A DNA stretch of 64,000 nt, taken from positions 46,500,001-46,564,000 of the forward strand of contig NW_024704745.1 in the NCBI RefSeq assembly GCF_018977255.1. Direction: 5' to 3'. Every line of letters starts with the position of its first letter. The first letter of the stretch is position 1. The stretch comes from Callorhinchus milii. Its lineage: Eukaryota. The position numbers were made by a program, and so were the translations under genes. Positions 8,669-63,889 of the stretch are shown here, one piece after another. The notes beneath the pieces were generated by a model. The model was given only the letters and a program-made list of their open reading frames with translations. It searched no databases and had not been told where the DNA came from.

Positions 8669-9046
8669 ATAATAATAATAATAATCCTTGCATTTGATAT
8701 AGTGCTTATCACGTCTTCTAGATGTCTCAAAGCGCTTCACAGAATATGCTATAAAGTGAATTGACTATATTTGTGGGAGAAACAGAGCAGCCAATTGCGC
8801 ACAGCAGTGCCCCACAAATGTCATGGATTGAGTGACCAAGTTATTATTGTTTTTTTTATTTGAGGGGATTATTATCCCCGGAAAAGCAATCCATCAATCG
8901 ACTAACAACTGGGTTCCTACTTATTACTAAGTAAACAGAGATGTGTGGAGTAAGGAAACTTGCCCAACATTTTACCCTGCTGGGAATCGAACCCAGGTCT
9001 CTCGCTTATGAGGCGAGTGCTCTAATCACTGAGCTACAGGACTCCA
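8669..9046 (-). mobile_element. Long-form DeuSINE
   Basis: Head, extra ~70-bp segment, core and older tail. Confidence 0.88.
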
Positions 9047-25059: not shown

Positions 25060-25343
25060 CACATCTTCGGGACATCCCAAAGTGCTTCACAGAATATACT
25101 GTAAAGTGAATTGACTGTATGTTTGTGGGTGAAACGTGGCAGCCAATTGCGCACAGCAGTATCCCACAAACAATCGTGGATTGAGTGACCAAATTATTAT
25201 TATTCATTTTATATTTTTCTTGAGGGATTATTATCAGGTGTGTGGAGTAACAAAACTTGGCTAAGGTTTTGCCTTGCCGGGAATCAAACCCAGGTCTCTC
25301 GCTTGCGAGGCGAGTGCTCTAACCACTGAGCTACAGGACTCCA
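25060..25343 (-). mobile_element. DeuSINE
   Basis: Head at 25343, core, intermediate tail. Confidence 0.8.
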
Positions 25344-38580: not shown

Positions 38581-39158
38581 GTAAAGGTTGGAAAGCAAAC
38601 TACTTGCCTCAAATCAACCATTGTCTTGGGAAATGCAATTTTGAAAAAAATTGTAGAAAATTGCACAATTCCAGGCACAACCCAAAGGTTCAATTAGCAC
38701 AGAAATACTCCACATCATGTTTTGGTTTCTCTGAGATTTCACACCTGGGTGGAGACTGAGTGGCTAACAACAGAAGTGCAGTAAGAATGTTGGGTGGGAA
38801 GTATCCCATAATGGTGGACGTGATGAGTTTCTGAGCCTTTTTCCATTCTTTCCTTTTGTATATCTGTGTATGGATCGCTTGTATTTTAAAGAGGTTGTGC
38901 TGATTTCTCAGATGAAGTTCAGAAATAAGCTACCTTCAGGAGTTACTGCTGATGCTGCAGAAATGACCTTCAGAAATACCCAATCACCTAGCATTACAAG
39001 TCATCAACAACTCAGTGACAAAAATGACACTTTAAATGTATTTTTGTAATGTCTGTACCAAATAATGCCAGGAGAAGCCAGAGCAGCAGAGCAACAGAGC
39101 AGAAAACTTTGCTCACTTTGCTCAGTGCTTTTCTTCATTCCATTAATCAATATAGGAT

Positions 39159-40292
39159 ACAACAACAACAAGATTCCATTTATAGAGCGCCTTTCACGTT
39201 GGGAGAACGTCCCAAGGCGCTGTACAGTTGGGTCAGGACCAGGGGGGAAATGGTCAGGGTGAGGGGAGGGAAGGGAAGGGAGGAAGCGAGGAGGGGGTAG
39301 AGAGTCGAGAGGGGAGCTGAAGGCACGGTCAAAGAGAAAGGTTTTGAGACCAGCCTTGAAGGAGGAAAGGGAGGAGGCAAGGCGAAGGCACTGGGGGATA
39401 GAGTTCCAGAGCCTAGGGGCTGAGAGGCTGAAGGCCCGACCACCGATGGTAGGGCGGTTGGGTAGGGGGATGTGGAGGAGACCGGAGCCAGAGGAACGGA
39501 GGGTACGGGCAGGTAGGTAGGGGGATAGTAGGTCGGAGAGGTAGGAGGGAGCAAGGCCGTGAATGGCCTTGTAGGTGAGGATGAGGATCTTGAATTTAAT
39601 CCTCTGGGGGGTGGGGAGCCAGTGGAGGCGAGCGAGGGTGGGAGTCATGTGGTCCCGAAGCCTGGTGCGGGACAGTACACGAGCTGCAGAGTTCTGAATG
39701 ACCTGCAGCTTGTGGAGGGAGGTGGCGGGAAGGCCGGCGAGGAGAGAGTTCCCATAGTCCAGCCTTGAGGTGATAAAGGCGTGGACCAGGGTTTCAGCCG
39801 CGTGAGGGGTGAGGTAGTGCCGTAGTCTGGTGACATTCCAGAGGTGATGGAAGGCGGTGCCAGTTGTGGTGCGGATGTGAGGGAGAAAGGACAGCTCAGG
39901 GTCGAACAAAACGCCGAGGTTCCTGACCGGCTTTGAGAGGTGGAGAGTGCAGCCTTGGATGCTGATGGTGTCAGCACCTGAGGTGCGGAGGCGCTGACGT
40001 GAGCCAATCAGGAGGGCCTCAGTTTTACGCACGTTGAGCTGAAGAAAGTTGTCTCTCGTCCAGGACTCAATGTCAGACAGGCAGGCTGTCAGGACATCGG
40101 TGGTCATGGAGTTGAGGGTAGAGGAGGAAAGGTAGAGTTGGGTGTCCACATACATGTGGAAGTTAACTCCATGTCTGCGGATGATGTCACCAAGGGGGAG
40201 CATATAGAGGGTGAAGAGGAGGGGACCGAGGACAGAGCCCTGAGGGACACCGCACGAGACAGTGCGGGAGCCGGAGGAAAAACCATAGTGGT
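39159..40292 (-). mobile_element. Young 5'-truncated L2
   Basis: 399-aa RT C-terminal ORF with a damaged YADD motif (MYVDTQ); (TTG)n tail. Confidence 0.93.
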
Positions 40293-40464
40293 AATAGCAA
40301 AAAAATGCTTATTGGTATATTATCTTCATAACATTTTGTTACTATTTTGGCAACCACTCTTACGAATGGGTTGATACCTTCATGAACCCTGACTCCAACA
40401 GCATTCTGAACAAATTGAGGCAGCTGGACATAAACATCTTAGTTTCCTTATATTGGCACCAGCC

Positions 40465-45853: not shown

Positions 45854-48800
45854 GTATGATTTCAAATAATTCTGCTCCAATAGTGTCTCAGAAAGCTTAA
45901 CACTGTAGCCTGACACCGAGCTGGGGAAGGTTACCTTTAGGCACAGTTGAAGAGGAGGTTAAAGAGGGGGCAAGGTGAAGGGATTGAGGCAGAGAGTTCC
46001 ATAGTTTTGGGGCCAGAAGGCTGTGGGCTCAACTATATTGGGGCTCACATAGTCTGGAACTCTCCAATGCAGGGTCGACGGTATACCTTATTGTTGGAAA
46101 TGTCAACTTTGGATGATATGTTAAACCGATGCCCCTGTCTGCCTGTTCAGGTGGATGTTAAATATCCCATGGCACTATTCAAAATGAGAAAGGACCTGGT
46201 CAATTATCCTCCCACTAAAATTGGTCATTCACATCTTGGCGTTGTGTGGGTTCCAGGCAGGGCAAAACCTTGGGCAAGTTTCCTTACTCCACACGCCTGA
46301 TAATAATCCCTCCAAAACAAAAAACAATAATAAATTGGTCATTTTCAATCCACGATTATTTGTGGGACACTGCTGTGTGCAATTGGCTGCCGCGTTTTGC
46401 CCACAAATATACGGTCAATTCACTTTACAGCATATTCTGTGAAGCGCTTTGAGATGTCTAGAAGACATGAAAAGCGCTATATCAAATGCAATGATTATTA
46501 AATTGGCAGCCACATTTGCTTAAAAATACACAATTCACTTTATAGTAAATGTCATGAAGCCTTTTGAGATGTCTCAACGATGTGATAATATGTTCTTATC
46601 GGCAAGGAAAATATAATGACTAATGGGTATTGAGGCTGGATGTAAAGAATAAAAACATATAAATTTTCTGCACAGGAAGAGGCTATGTGACGCATCATGT
46701 CTAAAATACTACCTGATTTTCTAAATCACTTTTTATATAAATCCCATTTTCCTGGTCTCTTTCAATATCGTTTAATGTTTTACAGTTCAAGTGCTTATCC
46801 TGTTCTTTTGAATGATTCTGTTGATTACAGCCTCAGAAAGCCCTTGTAATGAATTCCCAGATGTGATGATACATTCTGTACAATTGGAATAGCAATTTGT
46901 ACTTGTATAGTTCCTTTAATGTAAACAAACATCTTGAAGATCTGTGTGGAAACTCAAGCAAGATGGGGAAATATGGGAGTAAGAGGAATGTGCCAAAGAG
47001 GGAGTTTTGAAGTGTTTTGAAGGCATGGGGGGAGGACGTGAGATTGTAAGAATTCCGTAAAACAAATGTGTAGTACTGTAAGTACTAAACTTGCATCACT
47101 GAACCAACATTGCAGCTGAAGAACTTCAGAGAATTTATTGCAATCTGTAGGTTAATCTATTTCTTTTTTACAGTGTAGCACATACAAAAAGTATCTTTTG
47201 TAAATGAGTATAGTAAATTGGAAATTCCGTGCATTTTTTTTAGGAAGGTAACAATAGTATTGGTGGGATTGGATAATGCTGGGAAAACTGCTACTGTAAA
47301 AGGAATTCAAGGAGGTAAGAAATTAAGTGTTTTTGTAAATTGATTTTGATGGTTATGTTGACATATGGCTGAAACACAATAATAAACACTGATAGAAAGT
47401 AATAACCCTTGTAACCCCTAATTTGTAAAGCTCAGTTTGGGCTTCCATTCAAATTCAGACATACAGATACTCATTGTACTGGCCTACCTCTGAGAATCTT
47501 AGGCATTTAGAGTAGTTCATACTGAACATACTGCTTAATACTAGGCTTCTATGCTTGCATCTTAAGAAATTTTAGAGTGGGCCTTTTTTCATATGAATAA
47601 AGAGAAGTGTGTTAAGCATTGTGTAAAACAAATCCAATGATTCAGTTCTTTACCAGAAAAAAATGCATTCGTAATACAGCAACAACCCTAACAAATTGCA
47701 TTCATATAGCGCTTTTCACGTTGGGAGGATGTCCCAAGGCTCTGGAAAAACAGGGTAACTGTAATAACACTGCTTTTTAATGTGAAAGCCCAGTACACCC
47801 AGCATCTGTACTGACTAGCTATTTCATTTCCTAAACGTTGCCTAAGTTCTCAAAGAAAGTGGCATCAGAGATTTTTCTGACTTGTGTGTAGAACACAGGA
47901 TGTTATGTGAATAATGCACAGCAATGCACAGTGACCACATGGTGATCTGGAAGGTGGCTATTTATTTATTTGTGTCTCACGAATAACGTGCCGCTAAGAC
48001 ATTGGATCCAGCTATCTGCGCTTATAAAAATTACCTACAGGAAATCTTATTGGTAATGATCAAACCATCTATTAGTTCTTAGCCTCGTCTCTTCGAGTAA
48101 GTGCACAAATTTACTGCTATTTTGTTTCACAGACCCTCAAGAAGATATAGCTCCTACTGTGGGATTTTCCAAAATTGACATAAAACGGGACAGATTTGAA
48201 GTAACCATCTTTGACCTGGGAGGAGGGAAACGAATTCGAGGAATTTGGAAGAATTATTATGCTGAATGTTATGGAATTATTTTTGTTGTTGACTCAAGTG
48301 ATGTTGACAGACTGGAAGAAACCAAAAATACTGTGACTGAAGTTCTAAGGCATCCCAGGATATCAGGGAAACCTGTACTAGTGTAAGTGTCCCTGCTGAA
48401 CATATAATAAAGTATTTTGCAGGTTTTTCTATTAATTATCTTGTGCAAAGCTAATATGCATTTTTTTAAAAAGCTAAATATACTAATGATTTATCACACA
48501 TGTTCAAATCCTATATCCTATTTCTTATGCCAATCACTTATAACTAGGTTTGACAGTTATGTGGATTATGTGGTTTGAATGAGTTTATAAAGAAAAATAA
48601 ACTTCATGGAAAACAACAACTTGCACTTATAAAGCGCCCTCCTCTCAGGGTAGTGTCTCAGAGCGATTAACAGTGGCACAGCTTGACACTAAGCCCCGGG
48701 GGAGGTGGCTGCAAGCACAGTTTAACAGGAAAGTTTTCAAGCGGGATTTGAAAGAGGGGACAAGGTGGAGGGATTGATTGAGAGTGTTCCAGAGTTTTGG

Positions 48801-51800
48801 GGTGTAGTGGCTGAAAACACGACCTCCAATGGTAGGGCAGAGGGTCCCAAGGGACAAGTAAGAGGTCAGTGCCAGTCGAGCGGAGACATTGGAGTGGGGA
48901 GTGAGGAGGTTGGAAAGGTAGGGAGGTGCCAGTGAATCGATTTGAACACGAGAGTGAGGACCTTGAGGTCAATCTGTTTGGTCAAGTGAAGCCTGGCCAG
49001 AACTGATGAGATGTGTACGCAGAGTTTGGTCAGTACGCAGAGGGCAGAATTTTGAATGAGCTGGATCTTGTGAATGTGGGCCTGGGGAGACCGGAGAGAA
49101 GTGCGTTGGAGTAATCCAAGCAGGAGGTGACAAACGCACGCACGAGGGTTTCGGCTGCATTTGGGATAAGGTACAGTCGGAGGTGGCAATATGGTGAAGG
49201 TGGAAGAAAGTGTTCCTGGTCAGGGACTGGATGTGGGGGATGAAGGACAATTGGGGGTCGAACCGGATGTCTAGGTTGCGCACTAGTTCGGTGAGTCTGA
49301 GGGAAAGCCCAGGGAGGTTGAGGAGATTAGATCTGCAGGAATGAAGACATTGACGGGAGCCAAGGTATATGGCTTCCATCTTGCCATATTCAGCTGCAGA
49401 AAGTTTACATTCATCCAGGCCTTGATGTCTGCCAGACAAGCTGATAGAGCATCGGTAGAGTTACTACTGCAGGAGGCAAAGTAGATTTGTGTGTCATCCG
49501 CGTACATGTGGAAGTTTACCCCTGTCTGGATGACATCGCCCAGTGGGAGCATATAGATAAAGAAGAGGGCCAAGGATGGAGCCCTGGGGTACCCCGCAGA
49601 TGACTGGGCAGTGGCGGGAGGAGAAACCATTTGCTTAGATGAAATGGAGGCGGTTGGTTAAGTAGGATTTGAACCATGCGAGTGCGGTCCCGCTAAGGTA
49701 GATGAGGGAGGAGAGCCGATGGAGGAGGATGGCGTGGTCGACTGTATCGAACGTGGCAGAGATCCAGGGAGCCCTGGTCACAGATAGAGACAATGTCATT
49801 TGTAACTTTGACAAGCGCTGTCTCTGTGCGTTCCAGGTCTTTAACAAGGAAGGGTAGGTTGGAGAGGGGACAGTAGTGTGTGAGATTAGAGTGATTGAGG
49901 GTGTGCACTTTGAGGAGGGATGTGATCACAGCGGTTTTCAGGGGGAATGGAACAGAGCCTGAGGAGAGAGACTGGTTGACCGTGACGGCCAGCAGGGGAA
50001 GAGAAGGGGGAGTTGAGTGACCAGCAGCTGGGTGGGGACGGGGGTCAAGGTAGCAGGTGGTGAACTTCATCTGGGTGATTATGATTGAGAGGGAGGAGGA
50101 AGAAATGGGGACAAAGTTGTATATGGAGGGGGAAGTGGCAGGAGCCGTGGCAGAGGGAGAAGGCGGTGTGGATGGTCTGGATGGGGTGGAAGGGGACATG
50201 TAGGGGACGATGCAGCCAAACGGATGTTTTCAATTTTTAAGGCAAAGAAGTCTAGGACCACTTCGCACTTGGCGTTTGACTTGTGGATAGAGGGGGCTTG
50301 AGGGGGTGCACGGAGGAGGTGATGACAGTGCAAAACAGCATCTTTGGATTGTTGTTTGCCTCCAGAATGACTGGAGAAAAAGTCAGTTTTGGCCTGTGAA
50401 AGGGAGAGAGGTTAGGTGCAGAGGTGCTCGAACCACAACTGGCGGTGAATCTTGGGGCTGGATTTCTGCCATCTGCGCTGGGGCATCCAGGTTTGTGCCT
50501 TGAGTGAGTGGAGGTGACTTTTGTACCAGGTGATAGAAAGCATATTTACTTATGGAATTGTATTGTTTATGATTTACATTGGTGTTTGTGTGTAGAGTGC
50601 TGGTAATTTGTGTAACGCTTCTTAATTGAATTTTGTCCCAATAAAATTAATGAAGATGATAAAATAAATGCTTTTTTTTGATGTAGATGAAACAGTCAGC
50701 GAGGTAGGCAAGAGATAATTCCACAAAATATTTACAAAATCATAAGAGGTACTGATAAAGACTATTTAGCCAAAGATAAGAATGAAGAATTTAGGAAAAC
50801 ACATCTTATGTTTGAGATTTCAGACATGCTGGATTACAGGCTGATCTGCTTTGTCCTATTTGAAACAAACAGAAGTCGCTGGGAATACTCAGCAGGTCAG
50901 GCGGCATCTATGGAGAAAGGAAAGTGAGTCAACATTTCGGGTCCACAACCCTTCGTCAGACCCTTCGTGCGTTCTGATGAAGGGTTGTGGACCCGAAACG
51001 TTGACTCACTTTCCTTTCTCCATAGATGCTGCCTGACCTGCTGAGTGTTCCCAGCGACTTCTGTTTTTGTTTCAGATTTCCAGCATCTGCAGTATTTTGT
51101 GTTTTGTCCAATTTGAAGCCTGGGATAGTTTAGTTATGATTTTGTAGCCAATATTTTGTACAAGGAAGTGGGATAATGAGCTTGCAAATTTATATGCATT
51201 TTATAATGCAGACTGAATGCTATATTTTTACTATACTTTCAAAACATAGTGTTACTACAGTATCATTCATGGGATGCTGTATATCGTGAGATCTGATGAC
51301 ACTTTCCATTGTTGCATTTTTACCTCGGCCCATCAGCTCCTAAATGATGTTTTAACTTTGTGTTCCTTTGTGGCTTCATAATATTTCTTGTATACTTTTC
51401 TTGCATGCTGCCAAGCTAAATGTAGTCAAAAAAATTATAACATTGCGTTCTTGTATTATTAAACAGTAAGTAAATACTGGTGGTTACATATTCCACAAAG
51501 TGATTTAATATTTAGTATTTAGCTTGGGTTACAAAATAACCATATGAAAACAAAGTGCAGGAAAACTACAAAAATCATAAAACTTTGAAATACATATTTC
51601 AAATTGTATTATAATATAAGATGAATAATAACTAAATATGAATGTTTACCAGACAGAAAATTATTCTATAGCATAGTAATGCAATTACTATATATTGTTT
51701 CTTTATAGACTATGATTCCAAAGCCTAGTTGTTAGTTCTCACCTTTTAACCTTCAGAGAGCAGTAGATGGGTAACACAAAAAATAAACTTTTTAAATGTT

Positions 51801-54800
51801 ACCTCTGTGGTAGTGAATATAGAATATGTCTTAATTATTTTTATATGTAAAATAATAGAGCTGTCTCCTATTTTTTTNCCTATAGCAGCTTATGTGACTT
51901 GATGTTCTGTGACATACTCACTGTTTTGTCCAGGCCTCTCACTACAAATGATAATTGAAAATACCAATGGCCAACCAATGTGTGCATGTGTAAGGAATCA
52001 ATTTCAAATGTAATGTTTCACAATTGATTTTATATGAAATGTCAAACATTACACTTTCCCTAAATATGTTTTTAAATATTAAAATCCTTTTGTAAAAAGA
52101 GTAAAGTTTTATAATTTAACATTAGAAATTGTTTCAAATTATTTTAACCTTAAAAAATAGCAATAGAACTGCAATGCGGAGGTTAGCAACTGCAATTTTT
52201 CTATGTAGAAAATCAGTATAGTTGTGCTATATCAAATGCAAGGATTATTATTATTCCTGCTGCATTCCATTCATTTTTTTAAGATAACATAATATTTTCC
52301 TGCTGCTAGACAAGTACTTCTGTTGGTTATATCAATGGATAGGGATGGTTTCCAAGTTGATGGCAATGTTGTTGTGCATTTTATGCCAGACAAGAGGGTC
52401 ATAAGGAGATCCTAGTACTTACTATGCACTTAGTTAGGGCTGCCTCAAAACTGTTTAATAACCAACTATCCTCAGGGGGCAGAAGTGGTAAGCAGAGTGT
52501 TCCTGGGGCTGAACTGGCTTCATGATGATGTGCCTGGGAATCGAATATTGAAATGGAGTCAATCCTTTGTGGCAGTCTCAGTAGTTTAGTTGCTGAATCA
52601 GGCAGGTCCACAGTACTCATTGTTAACGACAGATCAGCCAACCTGACTTATTGGCAGGACTTAGAAGGGTAGATCAGTCATTGGGGCAGTGATTCTTCAG
52701 GTATAATTCCTGTTAAGCTTGCAAGTCAATGTGTAGGAGCTCCCCTCCTTTCTCTCTCGCCATTCCCTCTTTGAACCCCTCTAATCCGGCTTCCGCGCTA
52801 CCCACAGCACGGAAACAGCCCCGGTCAAAGTCACTAATTACATTCTGAACATCTGTGATCAGGGCTCCCTCTGACTCCTTGTCCTCCTCGACCTCTGCCG
52901 CCTTCGACACTGTCGACTACTCCATCCTCATACACCGCCTCTCCGCTTTACTCAATCTTCACAGATCTGCCCTTGCCTGGTTTGATGCCAATCTCTCTCA
53001 CTGTCTCCACTTCGTTGCCTCTAACGGTTTCTTCTCCAACCCCCGCACTGTCACATCTGGTGTCACCCAGGGTTCTGTCCTTGGCCCTCTCCTCTTTAAT
53101 ATCTATATGCTCCCCCTTGGTGACAGCATCCACAGACATGGGGTCAACTTCCACATGTATGCGGATGACACCCAACTCTATCTTCCTGCCTCCACCCTCA
53201 ACTCCAGGACCACTGCTGTCCTGACAGACTGTCTGTCGGATATCAAGTCCTGGATTAGGGCAAATTTCCTACAGTTGAATGTGAACAAGACTGAGGCCCT
53301 CCTGATTGGCTCGCGCCAGCGCCTCAGCAACTCAGGCTCTGGCAGCATCAACCTCCATGGTTGCACACTACAGCTCACCAAGCCAGTCAGGAACCGAGGT
53401 GTCTTGTTTGACCCTCAACTGTCTTATCTCCCCCACGTTCAAGCCATGACCCGCTCTGCCTTCCCTCACCTCCGTAACATCGCCCGACTCCGCCACTACC
53501 TCACCCTTCAGGCCTCTGAAACTCTTGTTCATGCCTTCATCACCTCCAGGCTTGAGTATGCAAATGCCCTGCTTGTCGGCCTTCCCAACTCCTCCCTTCA
53601 CAGGCTGCAGATAATATTGAACTCTGCAGCCCGTGTCCTCTCCCGCACCAAACTCTGTGACCCCATCTCCCCCACTCTCTCCCGACTCTATTGGCTCCCT
53701 ATCCTTCAGAGGATCCAGTTCAAGATCCTGGTCCTCACATACAAAGCCCTCCATGGCCTCACCCTACCTCTGCGACCTCCTAATCTTGTTGTTAAATGCT
53801 GCTTTAGCCAGTTAAACTTCAGCAGTACTCCTATGTACACTATGGGGTCTCCAAACCTTGGCTCTTCGCAACCTGTGCTTTATATTCTCTGGAATAAGGC
53901 AAACATGGTGCACCTCTCTGGGGAGTGTGTACTCCATACCAGACAAATGAGAAACATCCATTTATAATTTATATATACACATGTGGAACTCTGTCTGATT
54001 TGGATACTACTCAGCTTCATAATGTGTGAGTCTGATACCCAACTCACCAAACAAGCAAATTGTTGTACCAAAGCAAGTTTCTCACCAAATCAAAGCACAA
54101 TTGAGTTTGCATAATGTAAGTTATCTATTGTTATTAGCCGCATAATACTATTATTGGTGGCTGGTCCAGGATGTGCTTGGTATGTTTTGTAAGTGTTTGA
54201 GTCATTCTCAATCTTCTTTAACATTGGGGATCAGACTCTTTACTTTTAGCATTGGCTTTTGGGCCTGGATAGTGCGATTATGTTGCAGTGGCCACAATTA
54301 TGTGTCAAACTTCAGGTGTGGGCCTAAGCCAGAGATGGAATTGACTTCTGAGGATTTGAACTTGACTGCTTTGGCAATATAGCTCCCAGCACTGAATCTT
54401 GTATTGTTCAATCACTAGTATCTAAGTAGCTGTGGTGGAGTATACTCTCAAATTGTGTATAATGTGCAGGTACTATCTAATATTAAAACAAGGAAAACAC
54501 CAGCAGCACAAAGTTCGACATGGATTTTTCTTTCTATACTTTGCTGCTAATTTAATTTCCTCCGTGGCCCTTTCTGTATATTCCTTGGTGTTCATCACTG
54601 TCTTTTCAATATTATCAATGTAGTCTCCTTGTGTCTGCACCAAAATTGAGGTCTGCAGGAAGAGGTCTTGCAATTCCTTCAGCTGATTCTCAAGACATCT
54701 TAGTTCTTTGTGGCGCTGCTCAATTTCAGACAGTTGTGATTTAGTAATTTTGATGTCATGCAGAAAATTTTCATTGAAAACATACCATCTATTATATTCT

Positions 54801-57800
54801 ACCATATTATTCAACTCTTCTTCAGATATATCTTTTCCAACAACTTCAAGCTGACGCTGTATAAATGCTTTACAGTTTTCTTTCTTTTTAATTAAAACAT
54901 TGTTAAATTCCAATATGGTTACTTCATACTGTTTAAGCAGCAATGTGTGTTGGTTCTTCTTCATTCTTGTAATGACTGCGTCTGCTCCAAAATCTACTAC
55001 CGACTGTTTCACATCTTTTGATAAAGCATCTAAGTGCTTGTGAATGGATTCAGCTTGGATTTTGAGGTCCTTAATGAGGCTGACATTGTCCTTTTTTATG
55101 ACGCTGAAACGGCGCATAGAGGCCATGATAGTAGAGCTTTGGTATCTCAGTTTCTTTATGTTGTTGTTCAGCTCATTGATTTCTTCTTGCATTCGCTGTG
55201 CATCCATCAAGAAATGCTCCAGAACTGGCTCCTTTTCAAAAATAATGGCTTGTTGTTTCAAGACTACATCTTCTTCTATTTTTGTGTTTGCCTCATTGTC
55301 TTTCTTTGTGTGATCTATTTCCTTTATACTTTGTTTAAACTCTTGAAGTCGGTCCTTCATATTGAGTACTTGTGATCAATTCATTTGTTTTTTTTCTACC
55401 ATTACCTAAACTTCCTTTGCAGATTGGTTGCTTTGTTTGGAGCTTTTTACAATTTTCTTTCAATTTCTGTGAAAATAAAATATTTTCAGTATGTTGAAGA
55501 TACAGAAAATGTTAGCAGACTCTTCATGTTTATGGTATTTTCACTACTCAACTAGAAAACCTAGTTTTTGAAGGGAGTGATTACCTTTTATTATTTGGGA
55601 GATTGTTGGCCAGAACACCAAGAGAAACTATCTTCTGTTTTTAAATAGTGCCATTGGATCTTTGATGTCCACCTGAACAGGTAGATTGGAGCTTGGTTTA
55701 ATATCTCATCCAAAGGATGACATCTCTAGCAATGCAGTGCACGCACCAGAATAGCATTGAGTGGTGGTTGTGATTATGAGTTCAAAGTCCCAAAGTGGGG
55801 CTTGAAACCACAATTTTCTGACTCATAGTTGAGAGTGCTGCTAACTGAGCCTTTCAGCAAGACCAAAATATGGTATTCTCATTGTTCAACTACAAAACCT
55901 AGGCTTGATATAATACCTTATGGTGTTGAGACATTTGAAAGACCTTTACAGGATTTTCCTGTGAAGTTTAATGTCAGTGTATTTGTATGTAAATGCAGCA
56001 GCCAATATGCACACAGGAATGTCTGACAAACAAAATTACATTTGTAAAGCTCCTTTCACGTCAGGAGGACATCCCAAGGCGCTGGTTTGAAGTGAATATC
56101 ATTCACAATTATTGGAAGTTTTATATGTAGAATTAGTGCAGTAATAAACTAAGCTATCGATGTGTAACATTCCCATTTCCTCTCATATCAATTTTGATTG
56201 ATCAGGCTGAAAGAAAATCTATACAAGTCCTTCATGAGTAAATACACGGTATGGTATAATATACCATGATTGTTGCCAGGTTTGATCCTGCTTTGAGTTA
56301 GATGATCTCAGCTGGAGTCCTTGGGTTACCTTCTTAGGGAAAGGAAAAAAATTGACCAGAGTTTGTGTTACTAATTGCTGTGCAAAGGACGTGTGTGGCT
56401 GTTGAGTAAGGATATATTGACTTCTTCTGTAATTTCCTATCTTTCTGCACCTCCCCATGGAAGAATAGACCACTATTTAGGCTTGTTGGGGGGGGAGTTT
56501 AAGTAGGTAGAATTTGAAGGCAAATATATGGCAGCCAGTTAGACCACAAATAGCCATGACATTAGGTTGCAGTGACATCACTTCCTGCATATGGCACATT
56601 AAACCAAGGAAGTTCTGCTGACATTACTTAACGAAGGAAGGATGATGGTGTACAATGTGCAAGAAGTGATCAGTGGCAATTTTACAATCTGGGAGAACTG
56701 TAGCCTTTTTTTAAAAGAAGGGACTCCACTTATAGTGGGACTTTTGAGCCCGAGGGACAGTTTAAAATGAGGTTCCCTGTACAAGGAGATCACAGTTGGT
56801 TTATTGTGTGCGCATTTCAGTAATCAAATTAGAAAAATGGAAAAGATCCAGGATCACAACATGAACTTTGAAATTAGAAATTAGTTGCAAAGCGATAAAT
56901 TGTTATCCTACTACTGTATTACACATGTTGGATTTATATTTAAGACTTACATTTCTGAATTTTTGCTTGACAAAATCCAGTAGGCATGTAACTAACTATG
57001 TTTGTGAAGGTGGAGCCATGACTCACAGAAGAAAATTGCACAAAAAGTTCTGAGAACAAAACCAGAGTGGAGATGTAAAAGTGCACACAGTTGTATCACT
57101 CTGCTCTTTCTACCTTACTTTTGGTTGATTTTACCTTTTTCTTCCTATCACCTGTTTTTTTCTGAGCTGAGAAATGGCTCTGTGGGTGATATCTGTGTTC
57201 TAAAACCAGAGGCTGATCAGATACCTTCAGAATTAAATTAGCATTTCATTTATAAGGTGGGTATTTTTGCCCCTCAACAGAATACTGCTTGTTTCCATGT
57301 GTCACTTGCAGCATAGTAGCACACTGAAGAGTTAGACAGATATGGGAATGATTTTATTGATAACCACACAAAACTTCTTGTGTAATAAATGTTATCCCAT
57401 CCACTCTGTCATATTATGAAAGACTACAGTTGGCTAGGGGAATGGGCACTTATTTTGTCCAGCTGTTATAAACAATCGTTTATACTCTATGGCATCCATA
57501 CACACTACTGCCTCACAGGAAAGACGTTTTTGTTTGTGACTGAAAGCTGTAGCCTTCTTGGAAGAGAAGGGGTTTCAAAAGGCATTTGATAAGATTGTAT
57601 GTCACATAATTGAGGACATAAGCTATAGAATTTTGAAATGTCAGTCAATAGTTTCTCCCTTTTGAGACTTTAACCTAAAACTATACAATTATGAAATGGT
57701 TTGCATCAAACAAGAACTGTAAAACGTCATAAAAAGGACATAAGTAATCTAAGTTTTAAGTATGTCATAGGGCATGACCAATCAAAATTGGAATATGAAC

Positions 57801-60800
57801 TTATTACTTTACTATTAAAGAATTTCCTTGGGAGCAAGCCCCTTGGGAAGCAAAACTGCAATAAGTGGTGATTCAATGTGAAAGCAGTGAACGTGTAAAA
57901 GAGATAAAATAGTCTTGTTGGGAAAGACCTCAAGATTCTAGTCAACTTTGCATTGTTGAGGGCTAGAGAGAGAAAAATGTATGGGAATGAGAGAGAGTTA
58001 AGAGATTGTTGCTGGTGGAAATTTTATTATGCCAGAGTTCTAGTTTGTTTATTGCAGTAAGATGAGCAATGCCTGATTTAAAAAAACTGAAAATATGTGA
58101 TGTGAAAATATGAAAGCAGCCATTTAAAAAAANCTGAACTCTCTTGAAGACACCTGAATGACAAAAATCTAATTCCAGGTGTTCCAACTCACTTATTAGC
58201 AAGCAACAAGCCCTGTTAATTTCTTAATTAGCATGGTAAATCTATTTAGTAATGGTTGCATTCGAAAACTATTAAATTACTGTAGAACTGACTCAGCTAC
58301 TGTTGAAATTGCTATGGAGCTCAGGTTTGCTTTAAATTATTGCCAAATTCATGGTCAGCTGTGGAAATGTAAAACCATTAATAACATTTTGCTGAGTGCT
58401 TTCAAGTACTAACTTTGTTGCTCAAGATATGATAAGCCATCCAAACAATTTATTTAGTCAACTAGCTGGTTAAGGAATTTAATGTTATGTTAATACTTCA
58501 GTGGTGTCATTTTATACATTCAATGAATTCAGCACCAGAAATTCTCTATTGTAGGAACAGAAGGGGGCCATTCAGCCCTTTTGAGCCCACTCAGCAGTTT
58601 ATAATATCATGGCAGATCTTTTAATCCCATTTCCCAGTTTTTCTCCACATCTCATAATACCTTTTTAAAAGAACCAAGTAATTCTGTTTCTATGGCATTC
58701 TGGACAGTGTGTTCCATATTTTCACGGCACCCTGTGTAAAGAAGTATTTTCTGAACTTGCTTCCAGCTAATTTACCTCTAATTTTAAGATTATGTTTCCT
58801 TGTTTTGGATCCCTCGACCAGAGTTTTCAGGTGCAGTTTTTTGACTGGAGAAGTCAAGGTAAACAAAATGAATGCATTTTTTTTTACAACGTAACTACAA
58901 ACTGCTTTTTCACTCAAATAAGAGAAATATAGGGCCAAGAAACACACAGGGTGCCAACGCTGTCAATAAATATATATATATATATATATATATAATCCAA
59001 GATCATTTATGCACCAATGCATGGTTCAGAGGTCATCTGTAAGAACATGATTTGTTTGGCAGTTAGCAGACCTGTGGTTGCTGCAAAAAGGATTAAAAGG
59101 ATTTCAGAAAAATATAATTTTTAATTATCAACTTTCATCAAAACAGGTATTTTTGATAAAAATCAGTTAAAGACTGATTTTAAAACTTCCTAACAATACT
59201 TACAAACAACTAACAATACTTATTTAAAAAAGACTCTTTGAAGAGAAAGCTATGCACACTAGTTGCAAGCATTGCCAATATTTAGCTTTTTATTTTACAA
59301 ATGTTATAAAAAATAAAACTATTAAACTCTTCCTTCCGTTCTGGGACTCTTTAAGAACTATGAATAAAATTAAAAATATTGGTAACAACTGTACATTACC
59401 TTATGCAGTCTTCATAGTTTCAATAACATTCTCACATAGGAGTCCTAGATTCCTGGTTTCTCTAATGCTTTAGCTGTCTCCAAGAGCAGAATTTATTCCA
59501 GCGTTTTTCCTTTTTAATAGTTCTCAATCTTGTTAGTGAAAAAGCAGCTTCCTGCATGTAATGAGTTCTCAGATTACGTAATTGGGCACTTTGCCAAGAG
59601 AAATGTGATCAAACAGTTTGGATGTCCTAATGACGTCAAGAACATGTGTTTCTGGGAATCTGGTTCAGCTTGTTAAAATGTCTGCTGTCTTCCTCAGTGA
59701 AACACAATTCCTCATCAACTGTCCAGTAGTGACCAAATATCGCTGGTTTAAGTTGTCTAGAAAATAAAATCACCATGATAGTGGCTTTTTGATTTAAACT
59801 ATTACTGTGAACCACCCATAACATTAAATTATTTAATGTAGAAAGCAGGAAACAAATATGTTGTGCTGGGTGGGTTAAATACGAGTAAGTACTAGAGCTA
59901 ATTTGGGAGACATCCTAGTCAGTTTTCCCAAAGTTATTGAGTTGGTCCCACCCTTAAATATTTGGCAAAGAACCATTATGATTTGCAATGTGGCGATGAT
60001 TTACTATTATGTGAGAACAAAAAACAACTAAACTCACAGTGTAGATTAAATATAAATGTTTAAAGTATTTTTCAGTAACTCCCATTATCATCAGTTTTGT
60101 TTGGATTGAAATGTTACATAAACAACATTCCATTGTATGTTACAACCACCAAACTTCAATATTATGCTGAAATCAACTACAGCAACAATATTTTTAATTA
60201 AGCATGTTATTGTGGAGTCCTGTAGCTCAGTGGTTAGAGCACTCGCTTTGCAAGTGAGAGACCTGAGTTCAATTCCAGGCAGGGCGAAACCTTGGGCAAG
60301 TTTCCTTACTCCACACGCCTAATAATAATCCCTCCAAAACTAAAAACAATAATTAAATTGGTCATCTTCAATCTACGACTGTTTGTGGGACATAATTAAG
60401 CGCTATATCAAATGCAAGGATTATTATTATTATTTTCCTCAAATTTAAACTGTTGGAATAATTTTATTATTTGAATGATTCAGAAGTTCTCATTGAGAGT
60501 TTTTAACACTTATTTTTGAAGGTATTAACCCACAAGTTCCAACTATCCTATACTCTTGAAGACAATTTAATATGAGCTACTCTTGTGCATGTCCGAACTA
60601 CAATTAATCTATTTCGGATAAGTGCTTGTACCATTTCATCACAAAAGATCAGGATACAGAAATTTTCCAGAGAGATATTTACTGTGCTTTGAATATTTTT
60701 GAATAACAAACAATTGTTAATAACTTTTGTCTAATAGTTTAACTGTGCTTTAAATGTGCTTTGAATATCTCTCTGGACAATATCTGTGTCCTGACAATAT

Positions 60801-63800
60801 CTGTATTCCTGACATTTAGATCATGTCAGTTCAACTCTGAACGTTTGTGCAGCAAAAAGAACAACAAGCACAAGCAAGAAGTTTTGGTTTTTCTCAAGTT
60901 AAGTATTGCTGTATTTCAGCCTCTTATTAAGTCTCACTATTATTTTTGTTTCAAATATCTTTGAGAGCAGGGCACTCTGCTCATTCACCACAGTTTCTTT
61001 TAAAGAGGACATGATAATGGTGCAGTACGCTTTTTACTTTGTATTTTATTTTTGTCTAAGTTCCAGATGTCAGGACAGAAGCTAAACTCTAAACCAATAC
61101 AGTACTTCATTATTGTAGAACGAACCTAGACTCCATTGTTTGCTGCTTACATTATTGATCCTTCATTGTTGGTTTCCAGTTTCTGTACAACTATTGAAAA
61201 CCGTAATATTACAATTGCATATTTTTGAATAACACAAACAATTGTCAATAACTTTCGTTTAATAGTTTAATTGTTAATAAACTAATATGATCCAGCATCA
61301 GCCATCAATAGCTCGGTCTCTTAGTGATGGAATGAAGAAAACAGTTGAACCAGAAATAAATCATTTTATTCTCTCTTTTAAATGAATCTAGCAAGCAAAT
61401 AACATACAACACACAATTTCAACAGTTGATTAATACCAATTGACTTTGAAATAACCTTAAACAAATGTCCATATGACGTATTAGAGCTGGTATTGCATGC
61501 TCCCAGGAGTGATTTGCCTTCAACCGAGTTTGTAACCCACTGAGAAATGACTCTTTAAAATTTGAATGTACCTTTAGGAATTTTACTATGATTTGACCAG
61601 ATGGAGAATCAGTAATTTTAGGAATTCCAATGTGACTTTTGGTCAGTTACGCGTAAAACCTTTGAAGTAGAATTTCCCAAACCTCTCAGATTCTGAGATC
61701 CATTGACACTCAATTCTTGACGTTGTGACAAGGAGATGCATTTATTTCATTATAATCATGGAGTTTACTGCAAGATAACAAGTTAATAAGTAACAGTAAT
61801 AATCCTTGCATTTGATAACAATCTTTTTGATATATTGCCTTATATTGGCCTTGTATAGTGCCTTATGTTAGTGCTTCTCTATGCACTTCTCAGGATTTAC
61901 TGTAAAGTGTAGTAACTGTGTATTTGTAATTGACATGAATTGGGGGTGTATTATCATCATAAGAAATTTGAACTGTTGCCAGTGGCATTTTATATAACAT
62001 GTACAGTAAAGCTTGAAGGTGTTTTTGACATGAGTTTCGAGGTGATTATGGTGCCTGCAACAGGAATTATCACACAACATGACAGAAGGCTCTCATGGTT
62101 GAATCATGATTTGAAATTGAGTTATATTGGAACTATTTGAATTTATGCAACAGAAACCACTGCTCATTTTCTTCACCAGATTGTGCTTTGTAAAAACACG
62201 AGTCCTCCGCTCCACCCTCGGCGGCCGTGCCTTCAGCCACTATGTCCCGAGGCTCCGGAACTCCCTTCCTCACTCCCTTTGCCTCGCTCCCTCCCTCCCT
62301 ATTTTCAGGTCTCTGCTGAAGACCTTTCTTTTCGATCGGGCCTTTGGTCACCTTCCTCCCCCTGGCTCGGCCCCGGGATCCGTTACTGTAAAGCGTTCTG
62401 AGATGCCGTCAGGCATGGAGGGCGCTATATAAAGCCAAGTTGTTGTTGTGATTCTGTGTTATACTTGTGTGTATAATTAAAGTTCAGACTCTCAAGAGAG
62501 AACTAATTAGATGTTTAAGAGAAATAATTTGGAGGGATATGGGGAAAATACAGGTAAATGGGTCTGAATGTTTTTACATAGAGGCTTTCATGTGGGGGAA
62601 ATGTCTCAAAGCACTTTTGTCTTTCAAAAAACCAACACGGGCCCAAAGGACTGATTGATCTTGTTATGTGCTGAAAATGTCTATGGTTCTAAGAGATTGG
62701 GAGGTGCAATGAGTTTGTACAATAATAGTACTCATTACTTGCTTCTCTGTGACTTGGGCTTTAATCTAAACCAGATTTGATAATATGTGAATCACTTTTC
62801 TAAAGGCTGCAAAATTTCTGTAGTAAGCATTTCTCAGTGAGAAATCAGTACCACAAAAATGTTTAAAATTGGCATTTCACTCAATAAGGTGGTAATTCTA
62901 AGCTAATAGGGAAGTGTAAATGTCACATGATATGTAAACATCACCAAAGGTCTTAAAATTCATTTATATAATCGACTATTCTAGTTAACCATGTATAATA
63001 TTTATTGAATACTGAATGATGCTTTCATAACATCTGACTTCATTCTTCTTGAACCTCACCCACTCTTGGTAATTTGCTGCTTAGCTCATGCAATTTGCTC
63101 CATTCTATATGGAGTTTCCAGTGCAACAACTCTTCAAAGACTTCTTTTTCTCCAAAGCAGCTCAAGCCAAAGCCCTGTAATAATAATAATAATAATAATA
63201 ATCCTTGCATATGATATAGCGCTTTTCACGTCAGGAGGACGTCCCAAAGCGCTTTACAGAACACACTGTAAAGTGAATTGACTGTATATTTGTGGGCGAA
63301 CGCGGCAGCCAATTGCGCACAGCAATGTCCCACAAACAGTCGTAGATTGAAAATGACCAATTTATTATTGTTTTTGGTTTTGGAGAGATTATTATTAGGC
63401 GTGTGGAGTAAGGGAACTTGCCCAAGGTTTCGCCCTGTGCCTGGAATTGAACTCAGGTCTCTCACTTGCAAAGCGAGTGCTCTAACCACTGAGCTACAGG
63501 ACTCCACTGTACTATAGCTACAAGAAACGGGAATATGTATGAACATTGCTTGTCCTGACTGAAATATCTTAAATAACCAGTTGCCTAAATAAATTAAATA
63601 CTTTTTTGGACTTTTCCAAATTAACTAAAGTGATTTGCTGCTTGTTTAACTTGCACACCCCACAATTATTACTTAAGTCCTTCCAGTGAGATGCAAGTCA
63701 TCATGAATTTGCATCGCAAATTGTTACTTGTAAATTAATTGTACAATAACTAAAACCATTAATGCTCTATTTGTTTATTTTAGATTGGCAAACAAACAGG

Positions 63801-63889
63801 ATTGCGATGGGGCATTAGGTGAAGCTGATATCATAGAATTTCTTTCGCTGGAGAAGCTGGTCAATGAGAATAAATGTGTATGCCAAATT
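45795..63889 (+). CDS. ARL13B: ADP-ribosylation factor-like GTPase 13B, coding exons 1-4 (partial; gene continues past the window)
   Basis: Exons 45795-45853, 47244-47314, 48133-48382 and 63784-63889 (59/71/250/106 nt, same sizes as recalled for human). Protein [39 protein letters not shown], with C8/C9, R79, W82 and Y86 in register with human numbering. Confidence 0.97.
46105..46590 (+). mobile_element. Compound: old Deu-domain SINE interrupted by a younger SINE (~46250-46500)
   Basis: ttcaggtggatgttaaatatcccatggcactattc (Deu domain), then short-form SINE body, then a second tail. Confidence 0.75.
47244..47314 (+). CDS. ARL13B: ARL13B coding exon 2 (P-loop)
   Basis: [23 protein letters not shown]; tttag| and G|gtaaga. 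Confidence 0.96.
48133..48382 (+). CDS. ARL13B: ARL13B coding exon 3
   Basis: [41 protein letters not shown]; cacag| and GT|gtaagt. Confidence 0.97.
48612..50520 (-). mobile_element. L2, decayed, ~1.9 kb, antisense in ARL13B intron 3
   Basis: [26 protein letters not shown]; tail at 48612. Confidence 0.9.
50861..51074. mobile_element. Palindromic Penelope-like (PLE) pseudo-LTR hairpin element
   Basis: 94-bp arms 50867-50960 and 50973-51066 with 4 transition mismatches and a 12-nt spacer. The sequence type CTGATGAAGGG..CCCGAAACGTT..GATGCTGCCTGACCTGCTGAG is recognised as PLE-derived from recall. Confidence 0.65.
50967..51009 (+). ncRNA. Minimal type I hammerhead ribozyme motif
   Basis: Stem I GUGcGUU/GACuCAC (6 of 7 pairs), core CUGAUGA plus extra A, stem II GGGU-UGUGG-ACCC, GAAA, palindromic ACGU in place of helix III, cleavage triplet GUU. 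Confidence 0.6.
52740..53795 (+). mobile_element. L2 RT fragment, sense in ARL13B intron 3
   Basis: [32 protein letters not shown]. Confidence 0.9.
54473..55360 (-). CDS. STX19: Syntaxin-19 (single coding exon, nested antisense in ARL13B intron 3)
   Basis: 295-aa [12 protein letters not shown]..., syntaxin Habc and SNARE helix (QGDYIDNIE), no TM, Cys-rich C-terminus [13 protein letters not shown]. An acceptor ttttattttcacag| at 55467 suggests an upstream UTR exon. Confidence 0.95.
   Translation of the reverse strand: MKDRLQEFKQSIKEIDHTKKDNEANTKIEEDVVLKQQAIIFEKEPVLEHFLMDAQRMQEEINELNNNIKKLRYQSSTIMASMRRFSVIKKDNVSLIKDLKIQAESIHKHLDALSKDVKQSVVDFGADAVITRMKKNQHTLLLKQYEVTILEFNNVLIKKKENCKAFIQRQLEVVGKDISEEELNNMVEYNRWYVFNENFLHDIKITKSQLSEIEQRHKELRCLENQLKELQDLFLQTSILVQTQGDYIDNIEKTVMNTKEYTERATEEIKLAAKYRKKNPCRTLCCWCFPCFNIR
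55600..55852 (-). mobile_element. Ancient tRNA-headed DeuSINE with full Deu domain (SacSINE1/AmnSINE-like)
   Basis: On -: ggctcagttagcagcactc..ttcaggtggacatcaaagatccaatggcactattt; related fragments at 1165-1330(-), 11120-11430(+) and 27490-27732(+). Confidence 0.7.
60211..60432 (+). mobile_element. Young SINE with deleted core
   Basis: Intact head; the core jumps from tgtgggacat to gcgctatatc. Confidence 0.85.
62190..62450 (+). mobile_element. L2 3' end, older subfamily
   Basis: [17 protein letters not shown]; tail ..ggagggcgctatataaagccaag(ttg)n. Confidence 0.85.
63178..63507 (-). mobile_element. Young short-form SINE, full length
   Basis: Head at 63507, (AAT)n tail at 63178. Confidence 0.9.
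63784..63889 (+). CDS. ARL13B: ARL13B coding exon 4
   Basis: [35 protein letters not shown]; tttag| and |gtaagt. Confidence 0.96.

Follow-up and report, generated by a model that had tools for sequence, protein, structure and literature searches.

How does a complete self-cleaving ribozyme motif come to lie in an intron of an essential ciliary gene, and does it act there? This question is raised by a stretch of 64,000 nucleotides (nt) from the genome of the elephant shark Callorhinchus milii (assembly GCF_018977255.1, contig NW_024704745.1, positions 46,500,001 to 46,564,000; 'the window' in the following, whose own numbering is used throughout), where the gene ARL13B harbours a long hairpin with a hammerhead ribozyme motif at its apex. 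The original prediction had interpreted the upstream arm of this hairpin as a built-in off-switch, which would allow the motif to persist in this gene. Our data point to another origin, i.e. this is very probably what remains of a Penelope-like element (PLE) that inserted as a short, dead copy in an ARL13B intron, with the hammerhead being retrotransposon cargo and the hairpin a by-product of integration. The minimal dimeric type of hammerhead found in PLEs is known already, and the window contains one more copy of it rather than an adaptation of ARL13B.

On the plus strand, the right arm together with the spacer at the hairpin apex reads GUGCGUU-CUGAUGA-A-GGGUUGUGGACCC-GAAA-CGU-U/GACUCAC, which by its letters as well as by a descriptor match is a complete minimal type-I hammerhead (50967–51009), its core boxes CUGANGA ... 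GAAA following the type-I order. Letter by letter, this consists of the 5′ strand of stem I (GUGCGUU, 50967–50973), the core box CUGAUGA (50974–50980), an extra A that is unpaired between A9 and G10.1 (50981), stem II (50982–50994), the core box GAAA (50995–50998), an ACGU palindrome in the position of helix III (50998–51001), U17 with the predicted cut directly behind it (51002) and the 3′ strand of stem I (GACUCAC, 51003–51009). The two strands of stem I, which form a short helix I on both sides of core and cut site, engage in 6 of 7 pairs, for which we calculate a chance probability of approximately 0.013. Helix II is made up of five pairs (GGGUU/GACCC, with one U–G among them) and a 3-nt loop, and its closing pair is G10.1–C11.1 (G50982 with C50994). 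A decayed counterpart is found on the minus strand of the left arm (50924–50959), where the arm alignment gives CUGACGA-A-GGGUUGUGGACCC-GAAA-UGUU-GACUCAC (in short, CUGACGA...GAAAUGUU); this copy has no 5′ strand of stem I, and its palindrome was lost in a CpG-to-TpG change at 50934 that turned ACGU into AUGU. In all these letters, i.e. the complete core, the 6-of-7 stem I, ACGU in place of helix III, the cut after 51002 and the two defects of the left-arm copy, the original prediction was accurate.

Is such a motif more than a chance assembly of letters? Our descriptor for minimal hammerhead ribozymes (min-HHRs) combined the core boxes with a bulge that could be present or absent, a helix II closed by G–C and no shorter than 4 bp, GAAA, pairable positions 15.2/16.2, U16.1, H17 and helix I. 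It found a single match in the window (at 50974) and none in 300 simulated 64-kb sequences generated by a second-order Markov model. For core and stem II alone, there were two matches in the window, i.e. one in each arm, where 0.013 were expected. The right-arm motif thus is beyond chance.

Its closest described relatives are the min-HHRs of PLEs, which have no helix III and should function in dimeric form (Cervera & de la Pena 2014, PMC4209133); the elephant shark is not mentioned in the parts of that study consulted. Features reported there beyond the authors' own search descriptor are an additional base that separates position 9 from 10.1 and the pair G10.1–C11.1, and further traits of this class are a palindromic 15.2–16.2 and a short helix I of about 4–5 bp. 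The window motif shares the CUGANGA and GAAA boxes, the extra base that stays unpaired behind A9 and ahead of G10.1, the G10.1–C11.1 pair, the ACGU palindrome suited for dimers, the absence of helix III and the short helix I, so the proposal of a Penelope-like minimal dimer-type hammerhead is supported. With canonical type I and type III hammerheads (Rfam) the window motif has in common the core letters and the topology of helices I and II, but it has neither helix III nor loop–loop tertiary contacts. A difference in spacing also exists, since the published PLE min-HHRs are dispersed singles or opposite-strand duals ~100–700 bp apart, whereas the two members of the window pair are separated by 13 nt only.

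The two motifs are embedded in an inverted repeat with 94-nt arms (50867–50960 and 50973–51066), which are 96% complementary and separated by a gap of 12 nt; if a single indel is allowed, the repeat extends to 50861–51074. As an RNA, the latter segment folds into one hairpin with −192.5 kcal/mol, which corresponds to z = −28 when dinucleotide-shuffled sequences are taken as reference. The left arm would represent an inverted 5′-truncated copy of a PLE 3′ end on the minus strand and without a tail, the right arm a sense-oriented 5′-truncated copy of the same 3′ end on the plus strand, and the spacer at the apex (50961–50972, plus strand) provides most of the 5′ strand of stem I of the right copy. 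Exactly four positions differ between the arms (50978, 50999, 51030 and 51047), all of them by transitions, as had been claimed before, and three of these four are CpG/TpG sites. The arm differences therefore look like neutral CpG decay, and because of the direction of this decay both arms probably read CUGACGA...GAAACGU at the time of insertion. Searches against microRNA precursor families gave only generic hairpin matches (20–40 bits as compared to gathering thresholds of 44–95).

Beyond the arms, the layout is that of an insertion. Direct repeats of 17 bp, i.e. TTTGTCCTATTTGAAAC on the left (50850–50866) and TTTGTCCAATTTGAAGC on the right (51103–51119), are identical at 15 of 17 positions, an identity that no more than 3 out of 2000 shuffled pairs of flanks attain, and can be taken as a target site duplication (TSD). 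From where the inverted repeat stops up to the right TSD copy, the right arm is extended by a one-sided tail of 36 nt (51067–51102, plus strand), such that the insertion as a whole is a near-palindrome of 236 bp (50867–51102) that contains a head-to-head pair of 5′-truncated copies. A likeness of the tail to the upstream flank (50808–50831) was discarded as chance, because its score of 22 was equalled at unrelated sites in the window. At the hairpin apex, ACCCTTCGT occurs as a 9-nt direct duplication (50948–50956 and 50960–50968), and TGAAAC, the last 6 nt of the left TSD copy (50861–50866), is complementary to GTTTCA at the start of the tail (51069–51074). Both are possible microhomologies, the former for joining and the latter for priming.

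This is how PLE insertions have been described. Typically, they are 5′-truncated, often with an adjoining inverted 5′-truncated copy, carry a 30–40-bp tail at one end and feature partial tandem or inverted pseudo-long terminal repeats (pLTRs; Craig et al. 2021, PMC8557442). The purified PLE protein of Anolis nicks and extends both target strands, with reverse transcription beginning at two internal RNA start sites on either side of the tail, at a distance of ~90 nt behind the hammerhead cut (Frangieh et al. 2024, PMC11167929). The window insertion shares with these the head-to-head inverted 5′-truncated copy, the one-ended tail and the TSD as well as a hammerhead no more than ~100 nt away from the insertion's 3′ end. 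It differs in having no open reading frame (ORF) and no full unit between its arms, i.e. it consists of two 3′ ends only, and in its 6-nt microhomology between target and template at the internal start, whereas initiation by the Anolis element PAc is reported to be non-homologous (PMC11167929). PAc and the window motif also both have an ATG within CUGAUGA, 26 nt ahead of the cut site; in the window, the reading frame starting there ends after 19 codons, and in the metagenome copies described below it is short as well.

Following the published mechanism, the hairpin could have arisen in a single integration event. A PLE endonuclease would have introduced two nicks 17 bp apart, one in each target strand, with each nick priming reverse transcription of the 3′-terminal ~100–130 nt of a PLE RNA including the hammerhead. 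One cDNA would have started from the distal site and thus carry the 36-nt tail, while the other may have started from the internal site, with the target end TGAAAC pairing with GUUUCA in the RNA. Both cDNAs would have ended ~0–13 nt upstream of the hammerhead core and been joined head-to-head near 50960–50972, where the ACCCTTCGT duplication would mark the junction. The outcome would be the 236-bp near-palindrome flanked by a 17-bp TSD, whose arms later drifted mainly by CpG decay.

If hairpins of this kind are by-products of PLE integration, they should not be confined to ARL13B. Closely similar repeats seem to be frequent among sharks and rays, a point that is not counted as evidence here. 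Scanning metagenome contigs for the pattern CTGATGAAGGG-N3-12-CCCGAAACGT yielded at least 120 contigs with this pattern, where we roughly estimate ~2 by chance, and these look like host DNA of invertebrates. As the scan pattern came from the window motif, independent evidence is confined to stem I, the inner portion of stem II, and the orientation and architecture of the copies. Among the matches listed, to which also the following counts refer, these parts outside of the fixed pattern behave like real RNA structure. Thus, in 92 distinct motifs, stem I pairs 1–4 are paired in 93, 91, 77 and 63%, with several pair types for each, as compared to 7–64% for registers shifted by one or two positions. 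Helix II has just 4–5 pairs in many members. A GIY-YIG ORF upstream of and on the same strand as the hammerhead occurs at a single locus among the listed matches (L085); otherwise, the ORFs beside the hammerheads are mostly host genes, or there is nothing, and most copies are truncated. The downstream box GATGCTGCCTGRCCTGCTGAG was also looked for in viral contigs, with nothing found in that scan.

The orientation of these copies is one-sided. Where a locus has one core on each strand, the two are arranged head-to-head in 9 of 9 cases (about seven of them independent; matches listed). When an inverted copy of the 60 nt following the cut site was searched within 1.5 kb, a partner was found upstream for 30 of the 113 listed copies and downstream for none. 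Tight hairpins with 5–15 nt between the arms account for 6 of 19 apparently independent inverted pairs among the matches listed, with the window pair in addition. These comprise four pairs whose geometry comes close to that of the window pair, L014 (arms of 93 nt, spacer of 5 nt), L031 (92 and 6 nt), L106 (90 and 7 nt) and L110 (82 and 15 nt), along with the tight hairpins L004 and L071 with spacers of 9 and 6 nt, respectively. In L014, even the one-sided extension followed by a duplication of the left flank (10 nt in this case) recurs as in the window layout.

Could such tight hairpins spread as units in their own right, i.e. as a non-autonomous, retrozyme- or SINE-like mini-element (SINE, short interspersed nuclear element) derived from a PLE, rather than being made anew at each site? 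Their similar size in several metagenome families would fit such an element, and vertebrate non-LTR retrozymes have been proposed as PLE derivatives (bioRxiv 10.64898/2026.07.22.740005). Retrozymes are defined in the same study by tandem direct rather than inverted repeats, however, the 64-kb window has no second copy of the hairpin, and the apex sequences of L031 and L106 differ although these belong to the same family, which suggests that they formed separately. We therefore consider spreading as a hairpin unit to be very unlikely.

A number of findings nevertheless weigh against a dead PLE copy. With 2 of 17 positions, the TSD copies show more mismatches than an arm divergence of 4% predicts, and the 36-nt tail, while fitting the published 30–40-bp one-sided tail of PLEs (PMC8557442) and the two start sites of reverse transcription (PMC11167929), has a boundary that is set by the TSD position alone. 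With 5 bp and a 3-nt loop, helix II of the window motif is shorter than in PLE min-HHRs, for which PMC4209133 gives, as descriptive figures, 7–8 bp in the families of Schistosoma mansoni and 6 bp in Drosophila virilis. The core letters of the metagenome relatives match by construction, as the scan pattern was derived from the window motif. No reverse transcriptase (RT) or GIY-YIG ORF is present in or adjoining the 236-bp insertion, and self-BLAST detected no second copy of the element in the window; weak 29-nt matches beside the tRNA heads of SINEs (E-values of 2–6) are taken as chance. Because there is neither an adjoining ORF nor a second copy in the window, the link to PLEs is one of motif and architecture rather than of homology to a named element, but the missing RT/GIY-YIG ORF is what is expected of a copy reduced to the last ~130 nt of a PLE. 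Finally, the Rfam hammerhead models, a search with which had been put forward as a check, gave no match at gathering thresholds in the whole window nor at E ≤ 10 in sub-windows of 551 and 66 nt. As the same models also miss the metagenomic min-HHR control loci, this negative result is uninformative and is not counted against the motif. As a background, PLEs have been detected in 23 of 23 vertebrate genomes compared, including that of the elephant shark, whose mobilome consists almost entirely of retroelements (PMC4350176).

The host gene can be recognised from its exons. Three Arf-family exons on the plus strand (47248–47319, 48129–48383 and 63785–63886) cover consecutive profile positions (16–35, 39–120 and 121–152, respectively), among solved structures, the third exon is closest to the ARL13B chains 4m9q and 5di3_B, which score ~14 bits above ARL3, and an N-terminus MFSLMANCC...REPVR is found near 45.8 kb. 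From these exon positions, the hairpin is placed inside an ARL13B intron of ~15.4 kb (48383–63785), between the third and fourth exons of the Arf domain, where the right-arm motif has the sense orientation of ARL13B, as originally predicted. An intact core on the sense strand is indeed what a functional hammerhead kept in ARL13B would require, with the upstream arm as a selected off-switch and either the ribozyme being conditionally releasable or the hairpin acting as a regulatory substrate for ADAR or Dicer. The energetics also seem favourable to this idea, as stems I and II can be imposed on the full hairpin only at a cost of +55.5 kcal/mol in the thermodynamic model; given this cost, the ribozyme fold would be excluded in a transcript that contains both arms, and sequestration by the hairpin, as proposed for this locus, thus holds in the model.

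Sequestration by itself does not make a selected switch, however. Hairpins of the same architecture occur in unrelated genomes represented by the metagenome DNA and correspond to the described structure of PLE insertions as explained by PLE integration (PMC8557442, PMC11167929), and hence the hairpin requires no gene-specific selection. Furthermore, there would be little to switch off. In vitro, cleavage by single min-HHRs was below detection and that by dimers weak (PMC4209133), and for the Anolis hammerhead cleavage required addition of the PLE protein (PMC11167929). Since single min-HHRs are inactive and the Anolis hammerhead depends on protein, no off-switch is needed for the motif to persist. 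Also the differences between the arms fit neutral CpG decay. The built-in off-switch is therefore not supported, and we give a ribozyme maintained by selection in ARL13B very little credence.

What, then, does the locus do at present, if it is a dead PLE copy? Catalytic activity is not expected of the single sense-strand motif, as helix III, a tandem partner of equal orientation and the PLE protein are all lacking. The ~94 bp of double-stranded RNA (dsRNA) in the ARL13B pre-mRNA would be a physical consequence of the two arms rather than a selected switch. This dsRNA is a plausible candidate substrate for ADAR or Dicer, a point that the proponent of a regulatory hairpin could equally claim: long, nearly perfect inverted-repeat dsRNA is a typical ADAR target, heavy A-to-I editing affects the Penelope repeats of lizard, and hyper-editing occurs in elephant shark brain (PMC5625713). 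As it may form dsRNA within a ciliary gene's pre-mRNA, the hairpin could become a test site for A-to-I hyper-editing. For annotation, nearly perfect hairpins with an apical hammerhead in introns of cartilaginous fish should be read as footprints of twin-primed PLEs and not as regulatory ribozyme switches or microRNA genes.

That the insertion is a miniature inverted-repeat transposable element (MITE) or foldback DNA transposon with hammerhead-like letters by accident is suggested superficially by a 236-bp near-palindrome with a flanking direct duplication, but is most improbable in view of a palindrome that covers nearly the whole element rather than short terminal repeats, an asymmetric one-sided 36-nt tail, a 17-bp TSD that is long for a DNA transposon, a motif with all hallmarks of PLE min-HHRs far beyond chance and metagenome partners that are strictly head-to-head (30 upstream and 0 downstream among the matches listed), as 5′-truncated retro-copies predict, and is further weakened because the elephant shark genome is particularly poor in DNA transposons (PMC4350176).

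Within the scenario of a twin-primed PLE copy, the position of the junction between the two cDNAs may deserve attention. Of the 19 apparently independent inverted pairs among the matches listed, 6 are tight, as is the window pair, and no pair of this set has its junction inside the ribozyme; some single copies of the same metagenome family end 13–17 nt upstream of the core. That head-to-head junctions accumulate directly 5′ of the hammerhead across unrelated families may indicate a favoured 5′ end or site of joining. More specifically, the hammerhead could mark where the RNA template has a defined 5′ end, e.g. the start of pLTR transcription, or a template dimer held together by ACGU could set the point at which the cDNAs are joined; we regard this as a speculative and rather unlikely proposition. 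If either were true, the PLE hammerhead would gain a structural role in integration, beside or instead of RNA cleavage, and if the junction position holds genome-wide, it could help to explain both the inverted insertions of PLEs and the purpose of their hammerheads.

The ARL13B intron and the rest of the window also contain other features. On the opposite strand of the intron (54476–55375, minus), there is a single-exon ORF of 300 amino acids with Syntaxin and SNARE domains, which resembles the arrangement of human STX19 within ARL13B; such nesting would then be ancient. Two long ORFs with motifs similar to non-LTR reverse transcriptases (39007–40308, minus strand, and 52849–53964, plus strand) are probably remnants of long interspersed nuclear elements, with the latter sharing the ARL13B intron with the hairpin. 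Nine nearly identical tRNA-like matches are distributed within 7962–63498 (e.g. 8972–9043, 25269–25340 and 60216–60287) and look like the heads of a tRNA-derived SINE family rather than tRNA genes. Single N characters occur at positions 51878 and 58133.

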